Shown in pieces: positions 30,761-53,044 of a stretch of DNA of 64,000 nt. Source of the DNA: Pavona decussata (taxonomy: Eukaryota); NCBI GenBank assembly GCA_977016875.1, contig CDRNST010000004.1, positions 1,116,001-1,180,000 of the forward strand. The letters run 5' to 3'. A program made the position numbers and the translations under genes. Under the pieces are notes generated by a model. That model did no database searches. It was given only the letters and a program-made list of their open reading frames with translations, and was not told where the DNA came from. Position 1 is the first letter of the stretch, and every line of letters begins with the position of its first letter.

Positions 30761-31071
30761 TTAAACACTACTTTCTAAAACACCTTGTGATGCCAAACAG
30801 TACTTTGTGCAGAGATGTTCCGTTTCAAGATCCTCATGCATCAAAGCCATGCCTAATGCAGCATACGTGGCTTGTGATCCTTGAGACCCGGTCCATCGAG
30901 CCAACGTGGCGAAACACTTGTCATCCAGTTTCGTTTGATCATGATCAATGTGCACCATCTCCGTCTCATCCAACAAAATGCAGCATAATGCCTTCCATTG
31001 TAAACCCAAGTCATGTGCTAGCAACAACAGATCATCACGAGACACCTGGCCAGGCTTATATGACAGAGGGT
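30761..31071 (-). CDS. Roco gene exon 13: C-terminal Death domain
   Basis: [73 protein letters not shown] matches the death-domain pattern (LA..LG..WK.L...L, I..D, L..W, AT...L..AL). Confidence 0.85.
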
Positions 31072-34000
31072 CTGCATGAAAAATATTTTACGGTTATTAG
31101 TAACTCCTACGCGGTCAAAAACGCGTACGTTAAGTCAGACTAGGACATTGTATACATTTACGTGATAATTAACCTCGTAGTCTTTAACGAATTCTTGTTT
31201 GATCGATATGTAAAGAAAGACTCTAAACCAATCGGTAAAGCCTGCGAATAATTCCACTGTCCCAGATCATTTTAACTTTGAATATCAGTAAATGTGACAA
31301 AACGTAGAGGAAATGTACCCGTAAATTTCTCGGAACACTCGAACAGTTTTCGGCCCCTTAAAGCATTTTTGAATTCCTTTTTTCTATCGATTGGTTGTAG
31401 GCTTTCGTACAAACCACCCCAAAGGAATGCTTAAGCTTGTAAAAGGTTTCAACGTTCTACGCTTCAAAATTAAATTGAAGCTCGAATTTCTGGTATTAAA
31501 CGCTGTGTACGTAAATTTGTGGGCCCGTACCTTGAGAAAGGCAAACCAGAGGCAGAAGTTGAATTTTGGCGACTTCATTTTCGAATTGTTGTTTAGGGTA
31601 TTTGTATGTAAAGGTGTCCCATACCAATCACTGTGAGGTAACTTACACGAATTATATACAACCGCTTGTACTCCTGGCCCCAGTTATTCAAAGAGCGGAT
31701 GACGTTATCCAGCGGATAAGTTGCTCTCCAGCAGATAAAATGTTTTTGTTGGAGGTTGGAGTACATTTTGTCCACTGGATAGCGACTTATCCATTGGATA
31801 AAGTTATCTGCTCTTTGAACAACTGGGGCATGGTGAGATGGGTAACCTTTGCCAAGTAACAATGTTGAGGTGGAAATGTTGCAAAGCGTAACGGCAAGGT
31901 CACACTTTTATATATTTTTTATAGATTTTGAACGAACGAAGGAACGAAGTAACCCACGAACCAACGAATGACGTGATTCCACTTGAAGTCCCTTTAAAAA
32001 TAAAAATAAAAAAGGAAAAAAGAAAGAAATATTTACCTGGGTAGTCATTGCGACGGAAATACTACGAGAGAAACAGAAACAAGGTTAATCTAGTGAATTG
32101 TTTATGCCATATGATGAGATAATGGTTCAGTCACTTAACTTCCTTACTAGGGCAATGCTCCGTGGGAATTAAGCGGTTTCCTCCTACTACTTAAATTTAC
32201 GCTGGAGAGTTAATTGTATTACCACAACAGTTCAAGCACCCTTTTCCAACAGACATAAACGATTTCCGAAGTCATTTGTCCTGGACATTCGTGTGTTGTG
32301 TTTTAAGTAAAAAGAGGCAAACAGGTTTGTATCATGCACATAGCGTTCAGTGGTACAGTTCCACGAGACAATTGGTAAATTATTTATGTATATGCTAAAT
32401 AGTGAGGGGCCTATAATACTCCTGTGAAGGACGCCAGAGACAACTGAATCAGACACGTACACATCCTAGTGTCTGTCAGTGAGGTGGCTATTAAAACACT
32501 TCAGCTGCCTCCGATTAACGGAGCGACTTTTCAGCCTCGTTGCCAAAAATGAGGCAGTACATCAGCGATTCTATTGCGAAAGGAACTTGGATGAGTTCCG
32601 AAAGTTCTGTCGAACTTTCTTCCTCATTTCTTGGTGTAGAACATTAACGAAGGAAACTTCACGCGGTCATAAAAAGTGCCAGAAATAACAAGATTTCACA
32701 CAGATAAGAAACAAGCACAACACCCAAGATAAACTTAGATGAGTTTATCTCGAAGGATAAACAAAACACATTGAATGGTCTTCTGATACCTTAAGCCAGG
32801 GTTTCAGCTTGTCTTCGTCTAACCGGGTATTAAGCTTTAAGGTGTGATCACACCTCAGAGGGTCTGCCGAGTCCAGTGAAATGAAGTGAGCACAGTCAGG
32901 ATGAAGGCAACAGGAAGCATGGTGCCACGAGCAGCCATCGGGTCCGTCCGATTCACCCACACACAGATCACAGCGTGCGCTCAGCCGCCATGTCATGGAG
33001 CGCAGCCACGGACATTGCTGACGAAGACAATCTAGAATGTCTTCAACACATCTGAGACGGAGAGAAAAGTAATCATGGACTAAACAAAAAGAATCCATTT
33101 TTATTTCTTATTTTACTCATCACCAGTGCGCTGAACTGAATTTCGCTCTGGTAGTATCTTACATAACTGTACATACAGAGAAATAAAATAAGAAAAATAC
33201 ATTCTCTTGATAGTGTACTGAACACTACTCTCATCCGCACACAGTCAAATTAATCGAGGCTTGCGAAACATGTAGTGTCCCTTTACATTTGAAACTCGTG
33301 GGAGCTAGGTCATTAACCTAGGGTCAAATAACAAACATCCTTGGTATGTGAGAATGATGTATTATTCAGTAAGTGACACAAGCATACTGGGAAAAAAATT
33401 CGAGTGCTCCTATCAGGAGTCCAACTTAAGACCTTCCGATTATTAGTTCGGATGCTCTACCACTGAGCTATAGGAGACTCGTGGGAGCTAAGGCCATTAA
33501 ACTTGGTATATGTCTAGCTCAGTAGTAGGTCATCGTTCGACTCCTGTTGGGAGAACTCGAATTTTCTTTCTCCGAGTATGCCTGTGTCCCTGACTGAAAA
33601 ATAAATCTATCACTTTTGTCTTTGTTTGTAAACCAACCAACCTGTAAACTTGTTGGCACACAGTAGCAGTCTCTCTCGCTTCATCTTTGCCATCATGAAC
33701 CAAATGAACCATGATCACGCTTTTGAAGCATGCAAACATCAAACTGAAGTCGCTCTGCCTCCCGATAAAAAATCGCGCTGCGTTGGCAAAAAGTTTAGGA
33801 GATCTTGCAGAATACTCCCGAGATGCCCATTGACCAAATAACACCACAAATCTGGCGAAAAAACCATAAGGAATATAGCCAGTGTTGAAGGTGAGGTAGA
33901 CTGGTGCAATCGAACCTTGGACACTTAATCCAGATATTTCATCGTCTGGCTTAGCTGTCAGTATAGATGGTACAAGGTAGAGTGGCTCACCATTTGGGGT

Positions 34001-37000
34001 ATCCCACCGACAAACCAGGTTGGATTTCTCCATAATGGAAAGAAGGGCTTCTTTTGAAACTTTAAGGCTGAGAGTTTGACAAACATAGCTGACAAGATCC
34101 TCCGACAAGATGCCCTTTTTGGCAAGGTTTTGGCGATGCTCCCGGATTACCATTGGTTCTTTCTTCCCGGACACAACTGTTATGATTTGACAAAATACAT
34201 AAATTAACCACTGTGGATCCAGTATGACCAGAGTTTTAGATTCATCAGCCTCATTGAAACAAAGTAACGCGCCACAATCACTCAGAAAGTGCAAAAGCTC
34301 ATCACAGTCTTCGTCTACTTCAAAACAACAAATTCTATCAGCAATTGCCTTGAACTCGGCTTTGGTGACATGTTTGACTCCATTACTGGCTAGACGATGA
34401 AGTACCTTCTCAACATAAAGCCACTGCAGAGGGATTTCCCGCTGTATGTGAGGTAGCGTAGAGGCCACAGCAATGACCGTTTGCCTCAATCTTTGGATAT
34501 TTGGATCCTCTTGTTGGAAAGGCTGCCCAGAACGAGTGTTGTCAACAGCAAACTTCTCATCGACGATGTGAGATGCAAATGCCTTTCTATGAAAACTGTC
34601 CAGGATGGCATTCATAGATGTCCAAGGATCTTCAACAACTTTGTCTGCATGCGTTCCAACTAAGATGACTGGTGGATGGGAAATACCGGAAGCATTCATA
34701 CTGCTGGAACCCTGAAAGGAATGAACCAAGTCCATCCACCTCATAAGGTGATCAAGACTGGATTCACCCCTGCACACCATGTTGGCCCCCTTTCCACAAT
34801 CCCCAGGCAGACTAGTGTCGCCCCTCTTGAATAGGTCTTTGCTCAGATCACATACAAGAAGATACACAGCTTCCTGTGACATGAAGATTGGATGCATGGC
34901 ATGAAAAAGAGATTGACCAGAAAAGTCCCAGATCACCGGCCAAACCTCTTCACCAACAGCAGAGTGTTCTTGTTGGAGGATACCCTCCACCAAGCTGATA
35001 ACTGTCTGTGGCAGATCATCTGAAGACTCAGGATCACTATCGAAGACGTCATCTCGGAAGAATGGCGAAGGAGGCTTCACACCATCATCTCTCTCTTTTA
35101 TTCCTGAAAGCAAAGAGGGAGTCGTATGGGAGTCAAAGAGGGAGTCAGAGGGAGTCAAATGACAATGAAATAGAACTTCTCGTAACACTTTTCATACTTT
35201 GATGCTTACACATTTTCTGCCAATTAAATTGCTTTCTAAAATTTAAAATCACTTTGTTAATGGGGGTTAAAATCAATAAGAGTGAATACATTGGGCATCA
35301 TCAAAGTTACGTACCAACTTCAACTTCCAACAAGAAAGCCATTAAAAAATTCAGGTTTGAAGGGGATTCAAACACATGACCCGTGTGATCAAGTCAGCTG
35401 GGAACTAGTCATTTCTGCGAGTGTAAATTGTACCTGTGGATTATGCATTCCCAGTTCACATTATGTGATATTTCATATCTTCACTTTCACCTATGGATGG
35501 TATCCATCCTCCATGGGTATAATACAAACTCCACAAAATGAGTAGCCCCCAACTGGCTTGATAAGCAATGGTATCTCAGAGACCACGGGTTTGAACTTCG
35601 CTAAAGTCCATATTTTTCAGGCTTTCTTTTTGCAATTTATTTTAAATTGATTGCCCAAATCTAATATACATTCACCATTAATCTGTTGTGGAGACAAGTC
35701 CATATGGTTTCCTACTCCATTGGAGAAAACATTTGCTCCAGAGGGAAGCTCCTGAAAAACAAATGAATCTTCAGCGCACGTCTCACTGTTCCACAGAGGA
35801 CTCTTTCTTGCTGCGTACTTCTTTGGCAAATCAGGAGTACTGGATTGTGTGGGAGAACCTGAAGAGTCATCAGATGCTCCTGACAGCTGCCGCGCCACAA
35901 GCTGAGCACTTTTGTGATCAAAAACAGTGGTGGTGTCATCGACTTGATGCGCTTTCCATGCCTTGATTCCAGCCTTTAACAGAGGTGTATCCATCTCCAC
36001 TCCCTGTGTGCTGGTTTCATGTTTGTTAAACATGTCTCCTTTGAGGGATCTTTTGAGGCTTGTTTTGCCCGCACCGTCCTGACCAATCAGCATAACTCGA
36101 ACACGGATGTCACATGTTTTACCATGTTCTAATGCTCTTTTGTATGCTGCTTTGGCTTTGCTGCCTCTTGCTAACACAGCTGGTGGAATAAGACCTGGGT
36201 AAGAGAGACACAAATGTATACAAACTTAAAATTACATTTCATGCATGAATGTTTCAAATTAAATATACCACTACCACAGAAGACACTGCACTTCGTTTTG
36301 GTTGGTCTGTTCACAACATTTTGAAAGGCCCTTTTAAACATCTAAAAGACCGTTTTCCCTACCCTTTTATAGTTCAGCTCGTGAAGTCCCTAACCTTTCA
36401 TATATGCACCTGACCAGCCTGAAAAAGGCACCCCTTTTTGGCACAGCCTCCCTGTTTAGAAAACCCCCTTTCCCCCTACCCTGGTTGTCACCAGTGTATT
36501 CAGTTGAGCTTACCTCTCTGTTCTTTATCAAACTTGACAGGCCGAGTGAGATTTGTCTTCAAAGAACCACGGTTGCTTTTGTAATACTACAAAGCAAACA
36601 GTTCAATCAGAGATTACTGCATGTAGAGTAGACATACTTATTATATTATTGAAAGAGAGGTGCAGGAGCATTTCCACTATTGATTTAGGTGCTTGCAAGT
36701 CTTAATATTATTGCTACATGTAACAGTTGCCAGCTTTCTTAATAATTGAAAGAGCAAGTCAGGGATGCAGGCTGGGATAAGTTCAAGTAAGCAGACCACC
36801 CCGAGCTTGTGTGATCAGCTCCCCCTTGACTATCAAGGAAGGGGCTGCTAGCATTCTGTTACATGCCAATTCGTATTTGTACCTTTTAGCATTGAACCAA
36901 TAAACAAAAATGAACTATTAGCATGGTGAAATCTTAGTGTAAATTTAAGTAAACACTAGCTGAACTCTTTTATAAAATGGACGATAAAGGTTTTTAGAAA

Positions 37001-40000
37001 GAATTAAACAAATTGACAGACATACCACCTAAGAGACTAAAAAAATAATTTCAAATCAGTTTAACTTTTATTTTCTTTTGTTTGTCTTATTACCATAAAT
37101 TATTTGAAACAACAGGAATAAAAGTCTGCCTGGTTTGAAACATTTTAAGCCAACAACAAAAATAAAACACAATAGGTAGTTTCACTTTTCTTACTAAACC
37201 CTTTAAAAGATCCAGTTACTATGCATATTATAACATACATTGGTGTAGTGTATACGACCATGTTTAAACCAGGCCTAGATGGATCTTCAATACACGGACC
37301 AAACACCCAACACTTAATGCAAAAAGGGCCAGGATTATCCCCTGTTAAGTATTCTGTTGTATTTCTGATCTCATGTATCTCAAGTATTCTGTTGTATTTC
37401 TGATCTCATGTATTTTTAATAACTGTATCCTTAATCACCCAACTCAACCAGTAAGTACTGCACTGACAGTTACAAGCAATATGCCATAACCTTTTTGACT
37501 ACACATCTTTGTTTGAGTGGTACATGTATGTATCCACATATAAGCCATGTCAAACCAGGTTTTTAAGCCAGAATTTGAAAACAGGGCATGCAATAGTTGT
37601 GTCTCTGGTAAAGGACTAGGTAATGGGAGTTCACAAGACAACTGGACAACAGGATGCCCTTCTGACGTAAAAAACCTAGCATCAAACAAACAAACAAACA
37701 CCCCAAAAAGCACAACAAACATAATTCCATCTACGTTATTCCTTGTTAAAATGATATACTGTATTGCTAACAAAAAGAGGTTTAGATAAAGTGTGTGCAA
37801 GGGAAGAATTTGATCCAAGTTAATTTTACCAAAGACCAGGCGGTGTGCGTCACGACCCACAAAGGGTGCTGGGTAAAAACATGGAAATGGCTCATTTGTC
37901 TCTGGTCACGATCGAGTAAATATCTCCCGAACGTAAGACTTATGTCGACTTACAGTTGCACTGAAACTGGGCATTCAAACTTTGCTTCCTTTTCCAAAAA
38001 CTATCACTAAAAAGAGCAATTTGGCAAATTTTAACGGTCTAGTGGCAGCCATAGATGTTTCTTGTTGGATACACAAGGCGATTTCGTTGAGTTATTCCCG
38101 GTTTGGAGACAATCAAAGGCGAAGATTATTAACCTCTTACTAACCAAGCGCGAGGGCCGTACTGGGGAATCTTGGCCCGAGGTCGTGGCAGTACGGAACG
38201 AGCGCAGCGAGGTCCGTACAAAAACGACCGAGGGCCAAGATTCCCCAGTACGGCTTGAGCAAGCTAGGTTAGTAAGTAGTTTATTATATGGCACTCGGAG
38301 CAAACTTGTTTATTTATAAAAAACGCACTTCCGGTCACTTGAATTCAAAGGGTTTCCGTCGTGACGTGTTTTTGATGACGCAAGCAACCCAGAAAGCAGG
38401 AGTTTGAAAACAAATTTACTGAACATTTACATGTAATCAGGTTGATTATAGAAAAGACTTCAAGAACGATTTGTAGCCAAATTTGACGAAAATCTTAACA
38501 GCTGAGGTTTGTTTTTGAAACTCACAAAAGGGTTTCGTCGATCCCAGAAAATTTACTAGGGCATCACAAAGTACGGATCAAGAAAAGGGTGCTGTGAAAA
38601 TCACATTGAACTTTAAAAGAAGTGGCATTAAGTCAATCGTCCTCATCGCTCTCATCTCTGGCTCGGAAACTCGGAAACATTCCATGTTGGAATCAGTCTT
38701 TTGGGTAGTTTCTTTGCAAAGAATGAAAGTATTTTTAGATTTTCTTTTTGCAGTTTAAGCTGTAAATTTTCAAATTTGCCGCTTGTCGTTAACAAAAATA
38801 CACGGCTTATGACCATTTCCATGGAAACGGTCCGTATGGTAAAATCCCGACCAAGAAAGAGCCAATCAGAATGCGTGTATTTACCTCAAGACTACCTTAC
38901 CATATAATAATTATGTTTATTCTTGTACTAGTATTATGTGCCGTCACGTCTGCTTGTGGACACTTTTTTTTTATGTATACATATTTAGACAGCGAGCAGT
39001 CGAGCAGTCCCTTTCTCCTAAGTTCTGTAGCGCATGATGGATCGAGCGAGCTAGCTAGCGGTGAGGCAGCGAGTTAATTTTTGTAATTTGGATAATTTTA
39101 TTAAGTGTCCCTTCGCGCGCAGGATCTGAGGAAAAAGTATGACTGCTCACAGTCTATTTTACATTTCTTTCGATCATTTTCAGTTTGCTTTTTTTATCTC
39201 AGGGTGAAAGAGATCTACATTTCCTTCTTGGATTTCTGGGAGAGAAATAGCATTTGCAAGCCCGTTGGCTTTTCCGGTCAGTTTCCCGGGAGTTGAGCTA
39301 CTTGGTTTACACGATCTCTTCATAGATTCTTTATTAGTTCAACGGCTTTCAACGGAAAAACCATAAGGGGTAGACCTGGGTAGACCCCGAAAATTCCAAA
39401 GTAGAAAGGATAAGCTAGCTTAAAGTGCAAAAGTATTGGCCAAACCCAGCAAGAGTAAGTAGCTTTAGCCTCAAGAAATTCAGTAAATCAACGACCAAAA
39501 CAACATGGCGGCGGGCGCGAGGTCGTCACCTTTGAAATGGCTACAAACGCAAGCAAATGCTTCAGCTTAAAAAGTAACCTAACCAGCATTAAGCCAATTT
39601 GTTCCTCTAACTTTGAAACGAATTTTAACCGGGCAAAATGTCACAGACTTCGTAAATGACGACATTTTCGACGGCTAACCTCTCCAGACTGAAGCTCTTG
39701 GGCACGAAGACTACTGATCAAATAACGCATTCTGATTGGTCGAATTTCGTGACGTACACCGCCTGACCAAAGACCATAAATAAGAATCTAAGCCATTTTA
39801 CTGATAACGAAATGGCAAAAAAAAAAAAATTTAAAAAAAAAAAAAATCAATAAATAAATCAATAATAATAATCATATACATTTCTACTAATTTACTTGAA
39901 ATAAGTGCCACTGGCTTACCTCTACTAACAAAGACAAGGTGTCAAATTGCTGAACATCGTCAATCGTAAAATGATAATTTTTCTTGGTCACCACTCTATA

Positions 40001-43000
40001 ACGGATTGACTTGCCTTTCCACCTATCAAATGAAAACAGCAGTCAAACAGCTTTCTAATACAAGCTTTTACTTTGAGAGGCTGCATAACTACTTGCTCTT
40101 CCCAGTTTTTTTGCTTCATTGCATAAATCTAGTAATTAAAGCTACAGTGGGTTACACGTGACAACTTCTTCCAGTAAGGAAAATTACATTCTAATTGACA
40201 TAGGTGATTAAGAACAAAAAAAGTATACCCAAAATTTCCCTTAAAAAATACCACAAAATACCAAATTTAAGAGATAATTACTTTACACCCAAAAAGATCC
40301 ATGTTTATGTAGTATCATTCCGTAATTCCATGGCTTCAAGGGGTATTTGGGGATGAATACCTCAAGTAATACTTCAAAACAGTCAAAAATATATCCCTTG
40401 TAATATTTGGACGATTTGGAAATATTGTGAGAGGTATTTATCCCAGATATCCTGTAGTATAGATCTGTTTATACTACAAGGCTGAGATCTGTGGATCACA
40501 GCACTGTCTGTATATTTATTCACATGCAAACGATTAACTTTCTTAGTAGAACATGTAAATTTCATACAAAAAGAATTGGGAATTTGGCCGACAAAAAATT
40601 CAAAGAAACTACATGTAAAATTTTTCTCATGTTTTTCTGAGTTACAGAAAGTTCATCAAAGTTTGCTTTATCTTTTTAAATGTAGCCAAATTTCTATGCT
40701 TCAGCAGAATGACCTAAAGATTATTCTGGCTTAACTAACTTGTCAGCTATGGAAGTGCTTAACTTTTTGCCACCAGTTTTGTTTCTTTCAGCACCATGCT
40801 AGGCAAGGGCAAGGTTATAGAGATGCTTTCCAGTAAAAGATTAAATATCACTTGTAGTCTTTTCAACCCTGAAGGCGATGTCATGGCCACCATCAAGGAA
40901 TTCCTGTCTGGTCTGTTTATAATTATAATTTTACATTTTATTAAACCTGCATGGAGATTACTGGGTACACAAAGAAACAAGAATTAATTAACTCACCACA
41001 AGTGGAGACAATAATCTCCTGGGTACGTGATGCACTCTCTGATAACAAACATTCCATCTCCTACACTGACATCTTTGACTACAGATTCCACCTCACTTGC
41101 AGACATTTTACCAATGTACCACCTAAGTAAATAAACAAGATAATTATTGGTTATACAAACATTTAACTCTAGAAGCCACGAGGATATACAATAATGGAGA
41201 CAATTTGCTTCTTCCAGGTAGTTTACATCCATGTCAATTAATAACCATTTGCAGCCCCAGCCACCTGACAAAGTGAACAAAAACTTTTATCTGCAACTTA
41301 ACAACCACATCAAGCTGAGTGGAAGGGTACCTGGGAAGTCTAGGGGCCTCCACTGTGTCGGACCCTAGACAGTAACATGCTCCCATGACTGGCAATTCCG
41401 GCAACCCAGCCGTGAGCCCCCATGCACAGTCATCCTGACACCCAACACACTGCACTTAAGCAGTGGAAGAGGGGAAAAAAGGGGGGAGGGGGAGGGGCAG
41501 AAAAACCAAGACAAACCACACAGAAACTCCACAGAAATCGCCATGCTTGAACATACTGCCACAATGCAGTGCTCTGTGCGTGCATGGTGCTAACCACAGT
41601 GCTGCTGATCGTACGATGAATGCCAGCTTTTCTTTGTTAGCTTAGTTTTAATTGCATTTAACTGCATATAATCATGTGAAAACAAGATTTATATTTTTAC
41701 ATTAAGTAAGAAATCCATTGTTGAACATTTACAGTCATGCAACATGTCACATTTCTGACACATAATGTCATATTTAAAGAATTAAAGAAGAATGAGAATA
41801 TCTGGTTATGAGACAAGTGTCCTGTCTGTTCCAATGCCTGCTATATAATTATATGACCAACATTTTTCAAGACAAACAACACCTGCAGGAATAATTGGGT
41901 TCAGAACAGGACACAAACCCAACCCCCCCCCCACCCCCAATTGTGTTAACATATAATTACAATCACTGTCTAATGCACCTACTCTTCATTCCAAGGGTGA
42001 ACCTGGACATAGATTTTTGAGTTGTCTACGATGTGATGGTCACCAAGAAGAAATTCATTCATAACCAGAGGTTTGCCTTCCAGGCGTAACAACTGACAGT
42101 CTGTAGGTACTCCACTCAATTCTGCAATCTGTTCTTTAAGAGATTGCACTTGATTAAAAAGATTTGTCAGCAGAGAGTATGTCTCTGAACCAACTACCAC
42201 ACGAAGCTGGATTTGTGAGGATGCCGTAGTTTGAAGGCGATGCCTTGGCAGAGTACTGTTTGTACATGAACCTATTGTGTAGAGAAAAAAGAGGGATTCA
42301 CCTATATTTATGGCCTGGCCCCAGTAATATGTTCAAAGAATGGACAACTTTATTTAATGGATAAGACGCTATCTAGCAGGTAAAATGTATTGGTTGAAGT
42401 ATGTTTTATTCACTGTCAGATAGCGATTTATCTTCTAAATAGAGTTATCCGCTCTGGTTTCTATAGACACAAAACTTATACAGCCATGTCAAATTGTTTG
42501 GTAGTACTAGATACAGTGTAGGATAAAAGGAGTAGCAGGCAGCAAGGGCCTGGAAATAGCCACTTTAAATGGTCCATTTTTGACAGCTTTCAGATAACAC
42601 TCTTTAAGAAATTTTTATTTCAAATAATACCATATTTATTTGATTAACTGCCCACCTTTGAATAAGCACCCACCTCGAATAAGCACCCATCCCACCCCCT
42701 CCAAACAAAAAACGTTTTTGTACAGTACTAACCCACTTGCAGTAAGAGGAGCATCGGTTGTGTTCCAACTTGGTTTTAGATACAGTAGTCAATGAACATA
42801 TATCTTGTTTATGGCTTGTTTATGTTAGTTTCTGTTCTTTGTTTTGTCTTGTTGAAGAGAAGTAAACTTGTTTTCCCTTGTTTTGTTATTCTCTAAAAGT
42901 GTCCTTACTTGCTGAAAATGCATGTTGGGGAAATAATAAGCGCCCACCCTCAAATAAGAACCCACCTCAAATAAGTGCCTACCCTCATGGGCCCAAAATT

Positions 43001-46000
43001 AAACAAGCGCCCAGGGTGGTTAATCGAATAAATACGGTATGTCATTTTCCACCAGTGCATGTAGCTTACGTGGGAAAAGCAAAGGCTATTTATTAAACAA
43101 GTATTTGAAAACAAGGTCAGGTGCAAAACTATAAAAATTGAATGTTCCAGACAAATTTGTGCACCTCCGTTTATTGAGTTGAAGGTATAGAGTTGAGACC
43201 GTTTTTCCTGCTTACAATCATTTGAACTAGTATTTCGTATTAATAAGTTTAAAGAAAAGGCAACAAATATTTCATTGTACTTGGCAAAATTGCTGATCAT
43301 TTTGACAGGACTGCTTATGGTAGTGAAAGGAACAGAAAAGAACATAATTGATGCAAAACTACTTAAACTACACTACATACCTTCCCCTGAATACAATGAG
43401 GACCCATCTGTGCAGTCATGGGACTCTAATCTGCTCACTGGTTCAGTTAGTTTGATTGGCAGTCCTTTATTGTTCTGGTAAAACTGTTAAAGACACAAGG
43501 AAAACTCATGAAAGCAATCTGGTTACAAAAAACTAATAAAAGTGGTTGAAATCCTATTATTTTATATAAGTTGCTTTATTTTTATATTATAGTTTATACA
43601 AATTATTTCAAATTACTGTTGATACTGATTGAAATAAACAGTGTTTCAGAGCACTTTTTTAAGAAAATTGTCTGCTGCAGGAATAAGGGTTAGTTTCAAA
43701 ATTTTGTTAATTTGTATAGTGTATTTTAATAGACGTTTCTGTAGTCTAAGAGCCTGAAATTCTCTCAATTATGAGGAGAAAAAAGTAATGGCTGGATTTC
43801 TCCTGTTTACTCTCTTTCTAACTTGCATTCTACTTGATTAACTTGTGATTGAACCTGGTTCATTTGTGTTTTGCTAAATTGCAAAAAAAAAAAAACAAAT
43901 TGACGCAAGTTTTTTAGCCTATTATTTTATATAAGTTGCTTTATTTTTATATTATAGTTTATACAAATTATTTCAAATTACTGTTGATACTGATTGAAAT
44001 AAACAGTGTTTCAGAGCACTTTTTTAAGAAAATTGTCTGCTGCAGGAATAAGGGTTAGTTTCAAAATTTTGTTAATTTGTATAGTGTATTTTAATAGACG
44101 TTTCTGTAGTCTAAGAGCCTGAAATTCTCTCAATTATGAGGAGAAAAAAGTAATGGCTGGATTTCTCCTGTTTACTCTCTTTCTAACTTGCATTCTACTT
44201 GATTAACTTGTGATTGAACCTGGTTCATTTGTGTTTTGCTAAATTGCAAAAAAAAAAAAAAACAAATTGACGCAAGTTTTTTAGCTGCCGTCTTCTTATT
44301 AACGATAAATTCTGTCATAACATTGTCAAAGTTGTTGTGAATCCATGAGCCACAGTCTTTTATGCAGTGCATTTCCAGCAACTTTGACAATCTTATGACA
44401 AAATTCATCATCAGTAAGAGGACAAATGCATCAACCCGGACAATCCCGGGGGGGGGGGGGGGGGGGGCTGGTACTTGGGTTCAGTTTTGCTCTGTATGTG
44501 CCGCTGGCCTCTCATAACTCCCGCTCCATTATAGTCTATTTTGTGGCCAGTTACAGACCCCATCTTAGTCACTTTTGGGAAAATGTAATTTTTGCGATCC
44601 CAACTAAGTCAACTTTCTATTTATGCATCTACTTTATCAATCCTTTTCATAGGTCATCCTAAAATGAATTGACACATTTTAAATTGAATGAAGAACACTT
44701 TACTTTTCACATACAGTACAAGCATTCCTAATCTTCCTAGAATTTTCTTACCCCAAAAACCCAAAAATGCGCTACCCCATTCTAGTAACTCTATTGAAAA
44801 TGCAACTCCATTCTAGTCAATCCAGTCATGAAAATGCGACCCCATCCAACGGCACATTCCCATTAGCCACTTATGAAGTAAGTACCCCCCCCCCCCCCCC
44901 GCCGGGGAGACAATCCAAGGACACACAAGACAATAAATCATGTCTCAAATGCAATGCTGTTAAACCTCTTAACTGCCCTATTTCTTGTTGTACATTATTT
45001 GTATGTGATTCACATTCATTCACTTACTTTTAGTCTTTTTGACCTCCCAAAACTGCAGTAATTGGCAATTACGCTATTGTGGTGCCCCTGCCTTAGTAAT
45101 AGTTGTTTTCCCCCTGTTATCTTGTCGTGTTGTTGTTTTTGTGTGTGTGTGTCTGTGTGTGTCTATAATAATTACTGTTACACATAGGTGAAGCTAATAA
45201 AAAAATAAAAATAAATAAAAACTGGTGACTGATGTCAATTTGTTAAATAGAATATTGCCACGAGTTGTTACAGCTGAATTTACAAATTTTCCATCAAATA
45301 ATTATGTTCTAATTATACCTTACAATGTTTATTCTGAGAGTGCAGAATTGCAGGATTATAACAAACAAATATGAAATAAATGTGATGTTATGTTTATAGC
45401 CTGGTGAATAAATGATTGACATATTTTTTTCCGTCAGTGACATACAAGTAGGCATACTCAGAAAAAGAAAATCTGAATTCTCCCAGCAGGAGTTCAACAG
45501 ATGACCTTCCAATATTTTCTTACTTAATTAAGTTTGGATGCCCTACCATGAAACTAAGTTCATGTGACAAACAACCTTCAAACTGCTAGTATTTGAATGT
45601 TGAAGGGTGGTATATGTGAAAGAAAAGGGTATATGCGAAAGAAATGTGGTGTTATGTTTCAAGTCTGGTGAATAGTATAGAAGTTTAATGACTTAGCTCC
45701 CACGAGTCTCCTTTAGCTCAGCAGTAGAGCATCCGAACTAGTAATCAGAAGGTCATAGGCTTGACTCTTGTTGGGAGAACTGGGATTTTCTTTTCTGAGT
45801 ACTGTATGCCTGTGAAACTGAATACATCTAGCAAATAAAAATATATTGGAGCAACAGAATGCCTTTTTGCAAACATGATGATTATACAGTACTTTTAGTA
45901 AAATTGTTCTGCACAATACACCTGATAATGCTGAATTATATTTATTTTACCTTCTATAACAGCAACTTACAAAAACGTTCCATTTTGCACCACCAATTCA

Positions 46001-49000
46001 TCATGAATTCTTATGTTCTGCTATGAAAATTTGACTTCAAAGCTTATTTTTTTTCTGTTTAGTTAAAGAGGAGGGGTGGGGGGGGGGGGGGTAAATAGAG
46101 CTTTTAGGTATTTACAAGTACAGCAACTTCTATAAGATGTGTATTTAAAAACAAATAAAGTCTGTATTACCGTGACCATCTCATCAATGCTGTTAAAAAA
46201 GTGTTGCTCATTAATGGTGAACATCATGTTCTTTTTACAAATCACTCTGTAATGCCTGATTTTGCCATCAATGCTGTAAAAAAAAGAGAAAAAACCACAG
46301 TTATCCTGTCCCAACAACAACTAAAAATTGAGCAATGAATAAAAATAATCAGGATATGCTAATATTAAAGTAAATTCTGTATTAAATGGTCACCCTTAAT
46401 TCAAGGGAACTCCAAACTTGATGACTTGCTACAGGACCACAGTGGTTAACAAGAAATCAACAAAAAAAATTAATATAACTTGTTGGAAGTGACTTAATCA
46501 CAAAACAAAACACTTCACAAAACAACAATATTTAATGACCAAATTCCATGGTTTTGTGGAAACTTGAGCAAAAAAGGGGATTTTTCATGCACTTTTGTAA
46601 CTTGAATGCAACCCCTCCCTTGATTAGTTGGCCACATTGTTCCAGTTGAACAAGTTGAAATATAATCATGAAGTAGCTCTGAGTTACATGATTTCCTAGT
46701 TTTAATGCAAAAATAGAGCCTTTTCTAGTGAGGGAGGGGAGGGGGCAGAAACAGTACTAATCTCAGGTTAGGGACTTAAACTATTAAATTAGCTCAACTC
46801 ATTGGGGGGGGGGGAGGTGGGGTGGTTAAAAAATCTGAGAGGCATACAGTGAGGAAAAATTGGCCACTTAGTAAGCCTTAATGGATTTCTTGTTATCATT
46901 AAATTAACCAAGCCAGTAACATACCAAACAAACAGGACATAGTCACCAGGAAAATTTACACTTTCTTTGACAAGAAACTTCCCATTGCTAGCGGAAGACA
47001 TGACTTTCTCTGCCTGGTCACGGGTAATTTTACCATGGAACCAACTTCAAAAAGAAACAAATAAAAAAACAATAATTATTAAAAAAGACAGTACTAACAA
47101 TTACTCAAAATTGTTCTCTGTAAAATTTGAGTCAAAGGACAAGTGCCAAATCAGGCTTTAAATATTATAATACTAAAATTATTTTTTATTACAAAAGGTT
47201 GACTAGTCTTATATGACCATGTCACATCTAACATAACATCAGAAGCATATACGCTTAAAAAAAAAACCCTACGTTTAAGTACTATTACAGTACCAATGGA
47301 AACCAGAGGATGAACTAGCAAACAAGTGTGCCCTTCCACCATAGGCAGAACAAAATTAATGTAAAATCAGTCGTCAAATGTATTGATTCCATCAATACAT
47401 TGCCAATGTTATCGGTGAGTTCCATCCCCCCATTGTCTGTCGCATTGCACAAGATTGGAAGCATTGGAAAAAGCCTGCGGCTGTCTGCATTGCAATCTGC
47501 TTCAGGAGTGAGTGTCAATGGAAATTAAAGAAATGCTCTGCTTAGATATTATAAAAAATGCCCAACCAATTGGTGCGACGTTTGGTTGGATCAGTAGAGG
47601 TACATGTAAAATTACAAATAGGCTGCAAGAAGTCCCACGAGGCTGTGGTACTTAATGTTACAACATTCACCTTGTCCGACTGATTGATTGAGTCAGAATT
47701 GTATGTTCTACCTACACGTGTTTGAGTGCACAACATAATGAACATATAACACTTGGCCATGGTCACCAGTAAGCTTTTGGTATACTGGTGCTATGTGTAT
47801 GCTCTGGAACATGTGAAAAAGGTGGCTAAGTAACCAAATCACTTGGTGAATTTGGCAGTGAGCCAGTCTTTATATCTGATGCAGGGTTATGCTACATTTG
47901 TATTCTCAAAACTAGTCTATGTAATGTCAATCACAGGATTACTGTAGCTGCCAAATCAACCAGCGCTCACTGTGTAAAGTTTTATTTACTGGAGTTATTA
48001 ACACCAAAGATTGTGTGGTCAGGAAAATAATTGAGCTCGTCCCAGCATGGCAAGCAAGTATCTTATGGTGTCACTCCAGTGAATAAAACTTTATATAGTA
48101 AGCGCTGGTTGATTTAATGGCTTCATTGGTCCTTATCGGTGATTCTCCATACAGGTAAGTCCAAAAACGCAACAATACAATGCCAGTTACAGTTGGCAAG
48201 TACACACCCTAAAATATGAAATTTACAACAACGCTAACTGAATTTATACGAAATAGGAGTTAAATACCATCATGCATGTGAAAGTGAAAGAAAATAATGA
48301 AAAAAAAATGTGCATCGCATGGTAACAGTTACTATAGCATATTTATTATTGCCATGTTGCCCTAGTGATTTGCTATTCGGAGTGATACAGCTGGGTGGAG
48401 ACAGAAAATGTGAAGTAAACTACGTGTATATTAAGGTTACCGTGTACCTTCACGGGTGACTTCAGTTAAATGGATATAGCGCCTCTCAGTTACATCACAG
48501 ATACCCAAAACCCTATATCAAATTAAAGCTTATAGAACTGGGTATTCAAATATTTCATTGCTTTTTCAAGAAAATAAATTCCCAGGTTTCCCGTAAAGTC
48601 GGAACTTGAAGGTCCAGGTCATTGTTCGAGAGTTCCAACTCAATGCGATTTTTATATTTTGTTTGTTTTCTCCAGGTTTTCTCCAGGTCAGGATCCCAAA
48701 AGCTTAAAAAACGTGTCGGGGTTTTCCATAATTCAATTTCGCTCAAAAGTTACAAATCATTTTCAAAACTGCGAGAAAACCATGCGGAGAGAACGCACGG
48801 AAATGGCTTCCAAGGAAAGAATTTTTACAATTATCGAATTCCCCAACACACTTTTGTTGGTTATATATTTTTCTAGCATCTGGCCCAATTTTACTGAAAT
48901 CGGCCAAATCGTTGTTGAGTTGTAACTCTTGAAAGTGTCTCCTGCAAGCGAAAATTAAAATTTGAGAAAACAGCGCTTGGAAAAAAATTCTCGCCACACA

Positions 49001-51839
49001 AACAAGTACCGCCCCCTAACGTCTTTATGGAAAATTAGCCAATCATTTTGCAAGCTACATTTTCTTCAGGTCACTTCCTGTGAAAATTTACTCACAGTTT
49101 TGCCGTACTCTCCTTCCAGAGTAATCAACTCTTTCACCATTTTGTTGGATATCTGTGGTGTTTGTTGTACGTGCACGTCAATTTTGTAATCTGCAATGAT
49201 TATGGGAAAAACAAAATGGGGACTGAAGCCGACCTCATCATGCAAAGCTGTTGGGCCGAAGCAGAAGCGGCTGAGGAGGGTAAAATTATAAGCGTTACGG
49301 AATTATCGGGGAACCACCGTATTAAACCGCATGTATTTTCTCAGTCAAATCAAAAATTCTTGCTACTCTTCATTTAGCCTGTGAACAGGCTCCCAAGTGG
49401 GGTATAGCTAGGGCGAAAAGAAAAATCGGCCAGCCGGGGAAGCGGAGAGCTTTTTGTCATCGCCCTATGCCCCACTTGGGAGCCTGTTCACAGGCTACTC
49501 TTCAGTCGAAAAGCCAGTGAATAAATCTATTCGCGCGAAATATTGTTGAAAATAGCGAAGTTTCGAAATTGCTCATCGAAAGTTCGGGTGAAAATTCGCT
49601 CTTGAAAACTCCCTTCTCTGGAAGATTTTAACACCTTTACCTACTTTAAAGTGTAGCATAAAGCTTTTGTCTTCTTTTATGTCAGTGTCGTACTCGAACA
49701 AACGCAACTTCTTCCACTAAATACAGGACATTCGAAGTGCAAGAACATGAGGGATTCAAGACTATAGACAGACCGTTCGCGCAAATATCACAACGGGTGG
49801 TTACACCAGCAGCAATATGCTGTTAATCAAAGTAAAATTTAACTTCCGGTGGAAATCGCTTACGTCCCAATTTCTCGGCAAATACTCACTCTTTTTCGAA
49901 AATTCTTTTTTTGTTTGTAAGAACTTACTGGGAAGTTTATTTTTATCTAAAAAAATGAAAATCCAAAAATTTTCTCTCTGAAGGTACACGGTAACTTTTA
50001 CTTTAAGAAAACAGCAAAGCAGCAGGGATCAAATCAATTAGCACTCCCACAGATCAAACATCTTATGCAGTGAACCATTACTCCACTGCACCTTTACATG
50101 TTTATCTCAATCTCAAAACATAGTTTTCTTTGGCTGTGCTGGCTGGCAAACTATATAAGTTTGTTTTTCCCGTTGTGATCTTTTTCTTTTTTTTTCTTTG
50201 AAGAGGTGGGTAAGCAGGTCTACCGATCGGTGTATTTCACAAATATTTTTGCCCAGGTTTTGGATAATTTCAGAGTAAAATTGTAATTGGCTTTGGAGAT
50301 CCTGCAAATGCAGCGGATTGTGGATTTATCGATTTTTTTCAGTCCCGGATTTTGGTTTTTGCCGATTATAAAATTCGGATCATGGATCTCTCCATTTTTT
50401 TCTCTATGTTTTCATGGCCGAAACATTGGATTGATTGTTGATTACATTCTTGTTCTTAATCCCTGAGAAACTTTGCTAAAACATAACCAGTACAAGGTAA
50501 CTGTTAAAAAATAATTTGTGGATTCGGATTTGAGTAAATTTTTTTACAGATCGATGGATTTGGGTGTTAAATTATAATAGACTGGCGGATTTGCGTACCC
50601 CTATTCAAACCCCTCTTTGAAGGTAAGCAAAATATGGATTTAGTTAAACTCTTTCCATCAGTACTAAGACCTGACAGGCTCTCTAAATGTTAGTCACTTC
50701 ATTGAGAGACAAGCTTTGTCTGTACAACAATTAAGAAAAATTTTTCCCCATCCCCCAACTGACCCATGTTTTTTATTTCAAAATGTTATGGTTTGTTTCT
50801 AAGGTAACCTTTATATACGTTTTAAGTGTTAACTAAAATAACTCTGACATCCCTATACCATATAACCCTCATAACCACAACTTCAAACACCTTTTAGAGT
50901 CTTGGGAAAGATAAACAAGAAATACTCCAGATTATTTGTTGTCTACATGTATTAATCTTTTTTTCTAAATATTACAATAAAAAATTGCCATTCCACAAAT
51001 GGGTTGATCATCTGTAGCAAACAGGGGTGTTTTCAGTTCACATTAATCTGGTAGCATTAGTGAATTCTCCAAAATGTTAATTAAAAAAATAAGAACCAAT
51101 GTATGGGGTATAAACTCAGGGAAATGAATTCAAAATTGGCACATATCTTTTCACAAAACCCTTTTCCACCAAAATTTATTTAATTACCGGCCCTCTTTCC
51201 TCTCTCATAGTAATACTTTAAAACGTAAGCCTATATTTGTTGATTGTTAATTAGCATTTTGGAGGTCACGTCCCAAGCATGCACATGTACATGTACATTG
51301 TAACTTATAATTTGAATTAAATTTTAAACTCACTTGAGATGCCATGGATGAATCTGCACGTACAAGACTGAGCCATGGTTCACACAGAACTCCTCCAAAG
51401 TATTGTACAATATTGTCAGCCCTTTATTGACAAAACACGACAAGTCAACCACACGAAGAAATAAACTCTCGGCAGGCAGACCCAAAATGGTAGACAATTG
51501 CTTCCTCAAATCAAAAATCCTTGCGGAATTTCCCCCTTCCGGGATAATGCTAAGAACTTGCCCAGTTTCCGTTACCACCTTGATGTAAAATAAAGTCGAG
51601 TTATTCTCTTTGCACGATAAATTGACGATAGTTTTCGGCTTTAACAAGTCCCCCAAACAAATGTGACTGCCATTTTTAACTTCCACCTTCGATCCATTTT
51701 GAGAAATATGGAGAATTTGAGCGGAAACTGGCAGCGAAGTCGCCTGGGAAATCTTCTCTTTTAGGCTTTCCACGGTATCCAAAGGAGTCACTTCAACCGC
51801 AATCCTCTTTGCATTTAACAAATCCACGAAAACTTGCAT
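30761..51839 (-). CDS. Roco-family protein Ubl-Ubl-SH2-Ubl-SH2-Roc-COR-Cys/His-rich-Death, 13 exons, 4002-nt CDS (about 1333 aa)
   Basis: Exons 51839-51334, 47044-46925, 46273-46171, 43483-43381, 42271-41983, 41122-40997, 40022-39920, 36586-36514, 36194-35676, 35103-33642, 33051-32790, 32061-32037, 31071-30761. All introns are GT-AG with matching phases (2,2,0,1,2,2,0,1,1,2,0,1), and the frame is open from ATG to TAA. Confidence 0.85.
32230..32690 (-). mobile_element. Degenerate non-LTR retrotransposon (CR1/L2-like) reverse-transcriptase fragment in intron 11 of the Roco gene
   Basis: [22 protein letters not shown]...RYVHDTNL is a decayed [22 protein letters not shown]...YADDT motif. Confidence 0.75.
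33370..33600. mobile_element. tRNA-derived SINE-like repeat present as a divergent inverted pair; relatives at about 45430-45820, 53910-54035 and 15830-16330
   Basis: tagctcagtggtagagcatccgaact...aaggtc.taggttcgactcct (A-box/B-box-like) on both strands; too degenerate to be a functional tRNA. Confidence 0.65.
33642..36194 (-). CDS. Roco gene exons 9-10: Roc GTPase and COR domain
   Basis: G1 [10 protein letters not shown]2 STQGVE, G3 WDFSGQ, G4 GTHADK, G5-like VDN. COR motifs [44 protein letters not shown]. Confidence 0.92.
36514..42271 (-). CDS. Roco gene exons 5-8: Ubl-3 and SH2-2
   Basis: Ubl: [14 protein letters not shown]...[28 protein letters not shown]...[21 protein letters not shown]2: WYIGKMS...[30 protein letters not shown]...[19 protein letters not shown]...LTRPV. 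Confidence 0.85.
43381..51839 (-). CDS. Roco gene exons 1-4: tandem Ubl-1/Ubl-2 and SH2-1
   Basis: Ubiquitin-like start [43 protein letters not shown]; second Ubl ending [11 protein letters not shown]2: [13 protein letters not shown]...[30 protein letters not shown]...[19 protein letters not shown]...LTEPV. Confidence 0.85.
43553..44285. repeat. Near-perfect 365-bp tandem duplication in Roco intron 3
   Basis: 43553-43917 is repeated from 43918; the only visible difference is poly-A length. Confidence 0.9.
48435..49996. mobile_element. About 1.56-kb non-autonomous TIR element at a TTAA-like site (Kolobok/piggyBac-like)
   Basis: TTAA|GGTTACCGTGTACCTTCA ... TGAAGGTACACGGTAACT|TTTA; no transposase ORF. 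Confidence 0.65.
49375..49497. mobile_element. TAG...CTA-ended MITE with 9-bp TSD (AcademH-like), nested in the previous element
   Basis: CTCTTCATT|TAGCCTGTGAACAGGCTCCCAAGTGGGG ... CCCCACTTGGGAGCCTGTTCACAGGCTA|CTCTTCAGT. Confidence 0.75.
50203..50615. mobile_element. MITE with GAGG...CCTC termini and 6-bp TSD TTTGAA
   Basis: TTTGAA|GAGGTGGG ... AAACCCCTC|TTTGAA. Confidence 0.65.
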
Positions 51840-53044
51840 CTTGTCAGTTGCGTTGCAGACTCAGTGCAGACTCATTCATTCAATCGTTCCACGTTGTATT
51901 AAATTAAACTAAAGTTCTGAAGGCTGCCACTCTTTCCCACAGGTGGAGAAGAAGCAAAGAAAAAAATCAAGAGACAAAATATAAAACATTTCGGCACATC
52001 TGGATTTCCGCATACTATGCTAAATCACAAGATACATGCTGATGATCGATATCGTTTCGCCATCTTCCAAGGCCAACCGCGTCAAGCTTCTCCATGACGT
52101 CATTCAGTGTCAGGTGCCTTCCGGAACTCGTCACACCATTGGAGGGTACACCTGTCACGTACTGTTATATTTTTTATTGATACATAATTTTTATCTCACA
52201 GTTTATGTCTTGCGTGATGTAGTCCCTTTGCAGGACTATAAAATTTTTAACAAAAGATGAATAAGAGAGAATAAATTTGCATAAGTTTTTTATAACATAA
52301 AAGTCCCAGTATCAGCCCGTTCCTCACCCCCCCCCCCCCCCGGCCAAAGAAAAAGATGGCCCAAATGGGCCATAGACAACCTACCCCATTTTTGGAGTTC
52401 ATTGAATAGGAAAAAGTGTGCTATGTAAGCTATTTAGGTATGTGCAGCGCCAAAGGGTATGATTTTTGAAGCGTTTTGGTCTGAAATTAATAGGGTATAG
52501 ATTTTAGTCTGAAAGGCTGGAAACGGGTGTAGATTCTAGAGACCTGGCCCTGGTTGTTAAAAGAGCGGACAACTCTATCTGAGTGGATAAACGTACTCCA
52601 ACCAATCGCTGGATAGCGATTTATCCGGTAGAGGTAGAGGTATCCGCTCTTAGAAAAAGTGGTGCCAGATCTAGAGCCAGGTACCACCAGCCCATGGTTC
52701 GAAATAGGATCAGGGTTTGGAGAACAGCAAATAATCTAAAAAAAAAGAGCAAGGCTGATTTCACGGTCAGGGAAGTATACAGCTACACACCCCCAGCAAA
52801 ATCAGAGGAGTACCCCACCTTTCCCCTCCTCCCCCCCTCGCCCCCCCCCCCCCCCCCCCTGCACACAGTTGATCTAGAGCCAGTTAAAAACCGTTTCGCG
52901 TGTTTCCCTCCTTTGAGTCGACTTGAGCCTGCGATGGACATTTCAGGGAAAAAGGTACACATCATAACGACATCATGTATGGGGACACAAATTGTACCGA
53001 TAAGAGCTTGTGATACGTACATCTGGATGGTGTGGACAAGAAAT
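51840..53044. promoter_or_regulatory. Divergent (bidirectional) promoter region between the Roco gene and SFT2D3
   Basis: The two ATGs are 1.2 kb apart on opposite strands. Full CRE TGACGTCA at 52095-52102, YY1-like CGCCATCTT at about 52058 and ETS/STAT-like TTCCGGAA at about 52119. Confidence 0.5.

Follow-up and report, generated by a model that had tools for sequence, protein, structure and literature searches.

A single-copy stony-coral gene predicted to place ubiquitin-like and SH2 domains in front of a Roc-COR-Death core

Gene structure

The 64,000-nucleotide (nt) stretch analysed here, referred to throughout as the window, comes from Pavona decussata (assembly GCA_977016875.1, contig CDRNST010000004.1, positions 1,116,001 to 1,180,000). 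Its minus strand carries a multi-exon gene that runs from an ATG at 51839-51837 to a stop codon at 30761-30763 and would encode a kinase-less Roco protein with the domain order Ubl-Ubl-SH2-Ubl-SH2-Roc-COR-(Cys/His)-Death, in which Ubl denotes a ubiquitin-like domain. The model comprises 12 coding exons and 11 introns, with 3957 nt plus the stop codon encoding 1319 amino acids (aa). It was drafted from splice sites and phases and then corrected against orthologous loci, and every exon boundary in it is fixed by conservation in six such loci. An initial annotation, made from the letters of the window alone, had proposed one spliced gene with 12 introns, 4002 nt and 1333 aa; the single spliced gene is supported, the counts are replaced by those above, and the 14-aa difference was not located. 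The same annotation had put forward the domain order, which domain searches, fold and comparative genomics bear out. Domains were assigned exon by exon from Pfam, PDB profiles or fold for each single-exon open reading frame (ORF), and the two SH2 copies are called SH2a and SH2b. The coding exons are as follows.

Exon 1, 51334-51839, minus strand: aa 1-169; tandem Ubl at about aa 1-77 and 84-165; ends YVQIHPW; phase-2 donor
Exon 2, 46925-47044, minus strand: first part of SH2a, with FLVKES; betaB5 residue Lys, not Arg
Exon 3, 46171-46273, minus strand: middle of SH2a (KIRHYRV); Pfam SH2 19.8 bits over profile positions 34-75; boundaries conserved
Exon 4, 43381-43483, minus strand: end of SH2a and linker; phase 0 to 1; detected through similarity to the matching SH2b exon
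Exon 5, 41983-42271, minus strand: third Ubl; ends YVQVHPW, as exon 1 ends YVQIHPW
Exon 6, 40997-41122, minus strand: first part of SH2b, with FVIREC; betaB5 Arg present, alphaA2 Arg absent
Exon 7, 39920-40022, minus strand: middle of SH2b; donor GAG/GTAAGC at 39920 (the slash marks the splice site)
Exon 8, 36514-36586, minus strand: 73 nt; end of SH2b and KFDKEQR; phase 0 to 1; 79-83% identical in four orthologues
Exon 9, 35676-36194, minus strand: Roc P-loop GQDGAGKT, switch I and start of the long interswitch insertion; internal exon
Exon 10, 33642-35103, minus strand: rest of the insertion, Roc G3 WDFSGQ and G4 THAD, COR-A and about 140 further residues
Exon 11, 32790-33051, minus strand: Cys/His-rich module
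Exon 12, 30761-31054, minus strand: Death domain, conserved tail with ESSV end, stop codon 30761-30763

Pfam matches fall in the following open-frame pieces.

51333-51839 and 41982-42200 (36.3 bits): ubiquitin
46792-47001, 46066-46320 and 40996-41280 (29.4 bits): SH2
35620-36213: Roc, P-loop
33533-35188: Roc, G3 region
30764-31045: Death, weak match

Exon 4 is taken as 103 nt and exon 5 as starting at 42271 because only this longer form keeps the frame in the orthologous locus L017. A previous version of the model, in which exon 4 had 45 nt and the acceptor of exon 5 lay at 42206, followed a phase-0 path that has no valid acceptor in L017 and was discarded. An additional exon between the Cys/His and Death exons was also considered and rejected, with no convincing candidate and no conserved block there, and a tblastx comparison of the whole locus with L017 and L011 detected no further conserved coding block within the gene.

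Conservation among stony corals

Searches with the Roc-COR exon recovered exon-level ORFs in coral assemblies and in Tara coral metagenomes, with identities grading from 92% to 55%. Six orthologous loci (L011, L017, L019, L020, L021 and L022) were compared with the window, making seven species. L017 (55% identical, within 11 kb) and L021 (67%, within 16 kb) hold all 12 exons in the same order on a single strand, and in L019, L020, L022 and L011 each exon that falls within the 10-kb flanks is present and colinear. All acceptors in the orthologous loci are AG, all donors are GT and all phases equal those of the window, a colinear 12-exon pattern that lies far beyond chance. The proteins of these loci are 55-86% identical to that of the window, and the initiating Met is invariant in 27 clusters of exon 1 orthologues.

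Ratios of nonsynonymous to synonymous substitution (dN/dS) are 0.05-0.60 on all exons in the diverged pairs (window versus L020, window versus L021 and L021 versus L022); the shortest exons offer too little sequence for a judgement in the closest pair. Purifying selection acts on all exons. Each of the two Ubl exons occurs once in the 602-Mb genome, in which Roc-COR gives at least 80 matches. The gene is a conserved single-copy stony-coral orthologue, lying between a divergent upstream neighbour and ABCF3. More distant matches at two further loci (L023 and L025, 43-47% identity) have no SH2 or Roc exon in their short upstream flanks and are probably paralogues; they are uninformative on how far the orthologue reaches.

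Ubiquitin-like domains and duplication of the front

Exon 1 matches Pfam ubiquitin at 30.5 bits and exon 5 at 36.3 bits (cut-off 25.4), and a profile of 27 exon 1 orthologues matches ubiquitin with an expect value (E) of 5e-8. The AlphaFold2 model of exon 1 has two beta-grasp units (mean predicted local distance difference test score (pLDDT) 85.4, predicted template modelling score 0.81), and Foldseek aligns about 165 of its columns to Met1-linked (linear) di-ubiquitin, ISG15 and the OASL tandem Ubl. HPW closes the Ubl units, which lead on into SH2. Since they have no exposed C-terminal Gly-Gly and the chain continues, they are predicted not to be conjugatable. At the position of Ile44, the first Ubl has His or a variable residue.

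The second Ubl of exon 1 is related to exon 5 (E 2e-7) and the first SH2a exon to the first SH2b exon (E 1e-11), and the cassette exons have common phases. These similarities indicate that the front arose through duplication of a cassette of one Ubl and a three-exon SH2 with symmetric phases, which would make it a clean example of exon shuffling.

SH2 domains and phosphotyrosine reading

In a phmmer search of PDB sequences, the first SH2a exon matches the C-terminal SH2 domain (C-SH2) of SHP-2 and the SH2 domains of RasGAP and CSK (E 3e-12 to 6e-12). Against a Pfam SH2 cut-off of 21 bits, the SH2a pieces scored separately reach 19.2 and 19.8 bits and the first SH2b exon reaches 29.4 bits. In SH2 domains the betaB5 arginine of the FLVRES motif binds phosphotyrosine. 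SH2a reads FL[VI]KES, with Lys at betaB5 in four of four species, and SH2b reads F[VL]IR[ED], with Arg there in six of six. Because SH2a has Lys in place of the binding Arg, probably only SH2b reads phosphotyrosine, and SH2a is probably degenerate.

The same residues can be read another way, with the gene still one gene but its front blind to phosphotyrosine. The Ubl and SH2 domains would then be structural or intramolecular modules of a constitutive Death-domain scaffold; ubiquitin folds could, for instance, contact the Roc GTPase as Ras-binding domains do, and a degenerate SH2 domain could sit on unphosphorylated ligands. Such a reading would fit the betaB5 Lys in SH2a of all species seen, the absence of the alphaA2 Arg from SH2b, the Ubl units without C-terminal Gly-Gly and a weak match of the Ubl to Plexin RBD (E 0.019). 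We regard it as unlikely: SH2b keeps its betaB5 Arg in six of six species under purifying selection, the first SH2a exon very closely resembles the phosphotyrosine-binding SH2 domains of SHP-2 and CSK, and the best match of the Ubl is ubiquitin itself rather than the RA or RBD families.

Roc-COR core, Cys/His module and Death domain

Pfam Roc matches exon 9 at 27.4 bits and exon 10 at 30.7 bits (cut-off 27), and the Roc motifs GQDGAGKT, WDFSGQ and THAD lie at aa 512, 706 and 798. COR-A scores 53.1 bits (cut-off 35.3) over residues 253-410 of the exon 10 ORF, and the COR domain of LRRK1 aligns over residues 234-420. The roughly 140 conserved residues that follow COR-A are presumed to be COR-B, a stretch to which no model matched. 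Among solved structures, those nearest to exon 10 are LRRK2 (E 3e-11), 4wnr, 3dpu and 6hlu (E 3e-8 to 9e-7) and, over COR, LRRK1 (E 5e-4). About 190 residues separate the P-loop from G3, owing to an insertion between switch I and DxxGQ at aa ~530-700, and in relatives the G1 and G3 matches are parted by the same large gap. The insertion is rich in Ser, Asp and Pro and holds one motif that is strongly conserved among orthologues.

Exon 11 carries the pattern C-x2-C-x9-C-x2-H-x4-C-x-H-x2-C-x-H ... C, with nine Cys/His residues invariant in seven species, and probably binds zinc. No Pfam or PDB sequence match was found for the module, and its AlphaFold2 model (pLDDT 48.6) was too poor for use in a fold search. 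At E <= 0.001 this genome holds 38 matches to the module, the copy of this gene included, and several that were checked lie just downstream of Roc-COR matches; it is therefore a feature of the family and not special to this gene.

The Death domain of the window scores 18.5 bits, below the Pfam cut-off of 22.6, and matches appear in seven of seven orthologues with a best E of 6e-6. A profile of the orthologues matches the death domains of RIPK1 and TRADD (E 2e-6), and also those of ankyrin and FADD. The tail that follows, CL.SQGV[LM]ESSV, is nearly invariant, and the protein ends in ESSV in seven of seven species (30764-30775 in the window; L011, L017 and L019-L022). This end fits the class I PDZ-ligand pattern [ST]-x-hydrophobic-COOH and is thus a candidate PDZ ligand.

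Probably one gene rather than two

That the SH2 half and the Roc half belong to a single gene with this architecture is very probable from the genomic comparison. The initial annotation had singled out the junctions 39920/36586 and 36514/36194 as joining the halves. Both have canonical donors (GAG/GTAAGC at 39920 and at 36514), acceptors at 36586 and 36194 that follow pyrimidine-rich tracts ending in AG, and matching phases, as had been expected. Because the exon at 36514-36586 encodes a normal SH2 C-terminal end, the junction that truly links the halves is 36514/36194. The intron between exons 8 and 9 measures 319 nt here and 151 (L021), 300, 554, 560, 570 and 617 nt in the orthologues, and is therefore too short to hold the end of one gene together with the promoter and first exon of another.

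Eight orthologous ORFs were compared across the start of the Roc exon. Homology opens exactly at GLIPPA, directly after the acceptor, and the sequence before it is unrelated. The exon 9 donor G/GTRAAT is conserved and no conserved start codon occurs at the exon start. The first Met of exon 9 in the window falls within the Roc beta-1 strand. The phase-1 donor of exon 8 fits the phase-1 acceptor of exon 9 in seven of seven species. Orthologues of exon 1 (E1) and of COR lie on contigs of equal size (2165548, 1034747, 519946 and 441714 nt), which presumably are one and the same in each case. A weak argument comes from annotated proteins, among which no stand-alone orthologue of Roc-COR-Death size (304-966 aa) was found. 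The share of sampled sequence words from 33533-36213 is about 0.70 in runs with transcriptome-sized contig sets, which we guess to be RNA, and 0.98 in DNA-like runs. The exonic fraction of this interval is 0.74, close to the ~0.70 share of the presumed RNA runs. These shares suggest that the Roc-COR exons are expressed and are silent on the join.

Two adjacent genes of one strand, with exons 1-8 encoding a Ubl-SH2-Ubl-SH2 adaptor and exons 9-12 a Roc-COR-Death protein, would fit the many Roc-COR paralogues in the genome that have no Ubl-SH2 front, a 36514/36194 junction seen in genomic DNA only, and a Met that lies seven residues inside the Roc exon in two orthologues (P0226 and P0235). Against this arrangement, the 319 nt between exons 8 and 9, or 151 nt in L021, cannot accommodate a terminator, promoter and first exon, the conserved phase-1 acceptor of exon 9 matches the donor of exon 8 in seven species while no start codon is conserved, and the tight linkage is kept at every locus examined. 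We consider two genes very improbable. That exon shuffling has left a chimeric or decaying product here, a pseudogene or functionless assembly artefact, could be suspected in a family prone to shuffling and in a gene whose introns hold repeats and a reverse-transcriptase fragment, but is already close to refuted by a frame intact over 12 exons here and in two full-length orthologous loci, by conserved synteny and by dN/dS values that, in the diverged pairs, stay well below 1 for each exon, and is scarcely credible.

Flanking genes and repeats

The neighbours had been named as ABCF3 and SFT2D3. The former is recovered downstream on the same strand, with a PWI_ABCF3 exon at 22575-22730 and a block conserved at the nucleotide level at 24262-24388, 6.4 kb past the stop codon, and four orthologous loci likewise have ABCF3 next to the gene on its downstream side. 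SFT2D3 was not confirmed, as the plus-strand ORF at 52583-53338 matches no Pfam family. This ORF overlaps a block at 53024-53238, 1.2 kb upstream of the start codon, that is conserved against L017 about equally in all three frames, which indicates conservation at the nucleotide level. L017 has an opposite-strand gene call at the matching place, and the block may belong to the divergent neighbour, as its first exon or promoter.

The intron between exons 3 and 4 contains a tandem repeat of about 365 bp, with identical 40-aa ORFs at 43571-43693 and 43936-44058, 365 bp apart, and a corresponding pair on the opposite strand. A minus-strand open frame at 32235-32465, within the intron that precedes the Death exon, is reverse-transcriptase-like and probably a retrotransposon remnant. 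A full retroelement ORF (RVT_1, RNase H and integrase) lies far upstream in the orthologous locus L019.

Proposed mechanism

As a whole, the best explanation of these results is a single conserved coral gene with the relay mechanism proposed for it here, and we give this explanation a probability of about three in four. Roc-COR is established as a nucleotide-dependent dimerising switch in other Roco proteins. In the coral protein, SH2b, with its FLIRES-type arginine, would dock on a tyrosine-phosphorylated partner, with SH2a as a degenerate or non-canonical binder. Roc-COR would then act as the dimerising switch, the Death domain, nearest to those of RIPK1 and TRADD, would recruit death-fold adaptors, and the Ubl domains and the ESSV tail would provide further protein contacts. 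This relay from phosphotyrosine through a GTPase to Death is itself tentative and less likely than not, at about one chance in three.

Several points weigh against the explanation. The database relatives are all single-exon ORFs that read into introns, that is, unspliced DNA, and the join of the halves is drawn from genomic comparison. An alternative promoter may lie in the 3.3-kb intron, or isoforms may exist that do without the front. The 14-aa gap to the initial annotation means that the model may have one small exon too few or too many. SH2a has no betaB5 Arg and SH2b no alphaA2 Arg, so that phosphotyrosine binding is not assured. GTP binding, dimerisation and Death-domain partnering are predictions only, as are the proteasome link and the immune role.

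A bolder version of the mechanism, which we consider a long shot, makes the protein the seed of a phosphotyrosine-gated death-fold signalosome with a built-in ubiquitin signal. Through its superposition on Met1-linked di-ubiquitin, the tandem Ubl would pass for a linear chain and recruit readers of ubiquitin chains; the RIPK1/TRADD-like Death domain would nucleate adaptors, and SH2b docking and the nucleotide state of Roc-COR would set the timing. If so, one polypeptide, conserved across reef-building corals, would take on the joint role of receptor, adaptor and ubiquitin ligase in complexes of the TNF-receptor type.

The Roco proteins LRRK2 and DAPK1 matter in disease, and the input into the Roc-COR switch is still debated. 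In the coral protein the predicted input consists of modules with well-understood ligands (SH2 and the ubiquitin fold) and the output is Death, so the idea of a GTPase relay is directly testable in vitro. The gene is a candidate for a conserved single-copy link between tyrosine-kinase signalling and death-fold signalling, of the apoptosis or NF-kB type, in corals.

Comparison with known systems

LRRK2, LRRK1, MFHAS1 and the prokaryotic Roco proteins of C. tepidum and M. barkeri have the P-loop, DxxGQ and THxD in common with the coral protein. In contrast to them it has no leucine-rich repeats, kinase or WD40, and identity outside the G motifs is low. No leucine-rich repeat was matched in the nine exon ORFs scanned, the unscanned short exons 4, 7 and 8 being SH2 ends, and no kinase or ankyrin match occurred in any scanned exon at E <= 0.1. 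DAPK1, a human Roco protein tied to cell-death signalling, likewise has Roc, COR and then a C-terminal Death domain. The coral protein differs from it in having no kinase, calmodulin-binding segment or ankyrin repeats, and in its Ubl-Ubl-SH2-Ubl-SH2 front, its long interswitch insertion, the Cys/His module between COR and Death, and ESSV.

The nearest sequence relatives of both coral SH2 copies are those of SHP-2 (C-SH2), CSK, RasGAP, SYK and ZAP-70. Like the coral protein, SHP-2, SYK, ZAP-70 and RasGAP have two SH2 domains per chain. The coral copies, however, are parted by a Ubl and not by a short linker, are attached to no phosphatase or kinase, and include Lys in SH2a. Linear di-ubiquitin, ISG15 and OASL resemble the front in their two head-to-tail beta-grasp domains over the ~165 aligned columns, whereas the coral Ubl units are without a C-terminal Gly-Gly, have His or a variable residue at the Ile44 position of the first unit, and are fused to SH2.

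A further comparison is with the expanded Roc-COR family of corals and other invertebrates (for example, Oculina patagonica LOC144636474 and LOC144659573), which has a 30-43% identical core with the same interswitch insertion, frequently Death and, in this genome, the Cys/His module in common with this protein. The arrangements of the 15 relatives scanned, whose identity is about 30-40%, include kinase-Roc-COR-Death, DED-Macro-Roc-COR-Death, Ank-Death-Roc-COR, Ank-LRR-Roc-COR, CREB-binding-Roc-Death, NACHT-Roc-COR, NHL-Roc-COR-HEPN, Death-Roc-COR, COR-OTU-Death and Roc-COR-caspase. None of the 15 has a Ubl or SH2 domain. Given these arrangements, Roc-COR joined to death-fold or effector domains is a known and strongly shuffled coral kind; the initial annotation had pointed to expanded, domain-shuffled Roco repertoires in cnidarians. 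Among sea-anemone immune genes, lineage-specific combinations of Roc/COR with TIR, kinase and Death domains have been described (PMC5094078).

Literature searches found no description of SH2 with Roc-COR, or of this architecture. The uniqueness first claimed is to be limited to the Ubl-SH2 front and does not extend to Roc-COR-Death, a large shuffled family with at least 80 Roc-COR matches in this genome: what seems new is the Ubl-SH2 front on Roc-COR-Death, and what is known is the shuffled Roc-COR core with death-fold domains. Roc-COR paralogues in this genome form dense tandem clusters on contigs C289, C105, C14, C35, C436 and C25, with about a dozen paralogues on C289, three identical copies spaced by 43 kb on C436, and many with stop codons on C25. 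The gene studied here is set apart from its relatives by single-copy syntenic conservation under purifying selection; it is a syntenic orthologue and not a tandem lineage-specific copy, in contrast to relatives that are fast-evolving and tandemly expanded.

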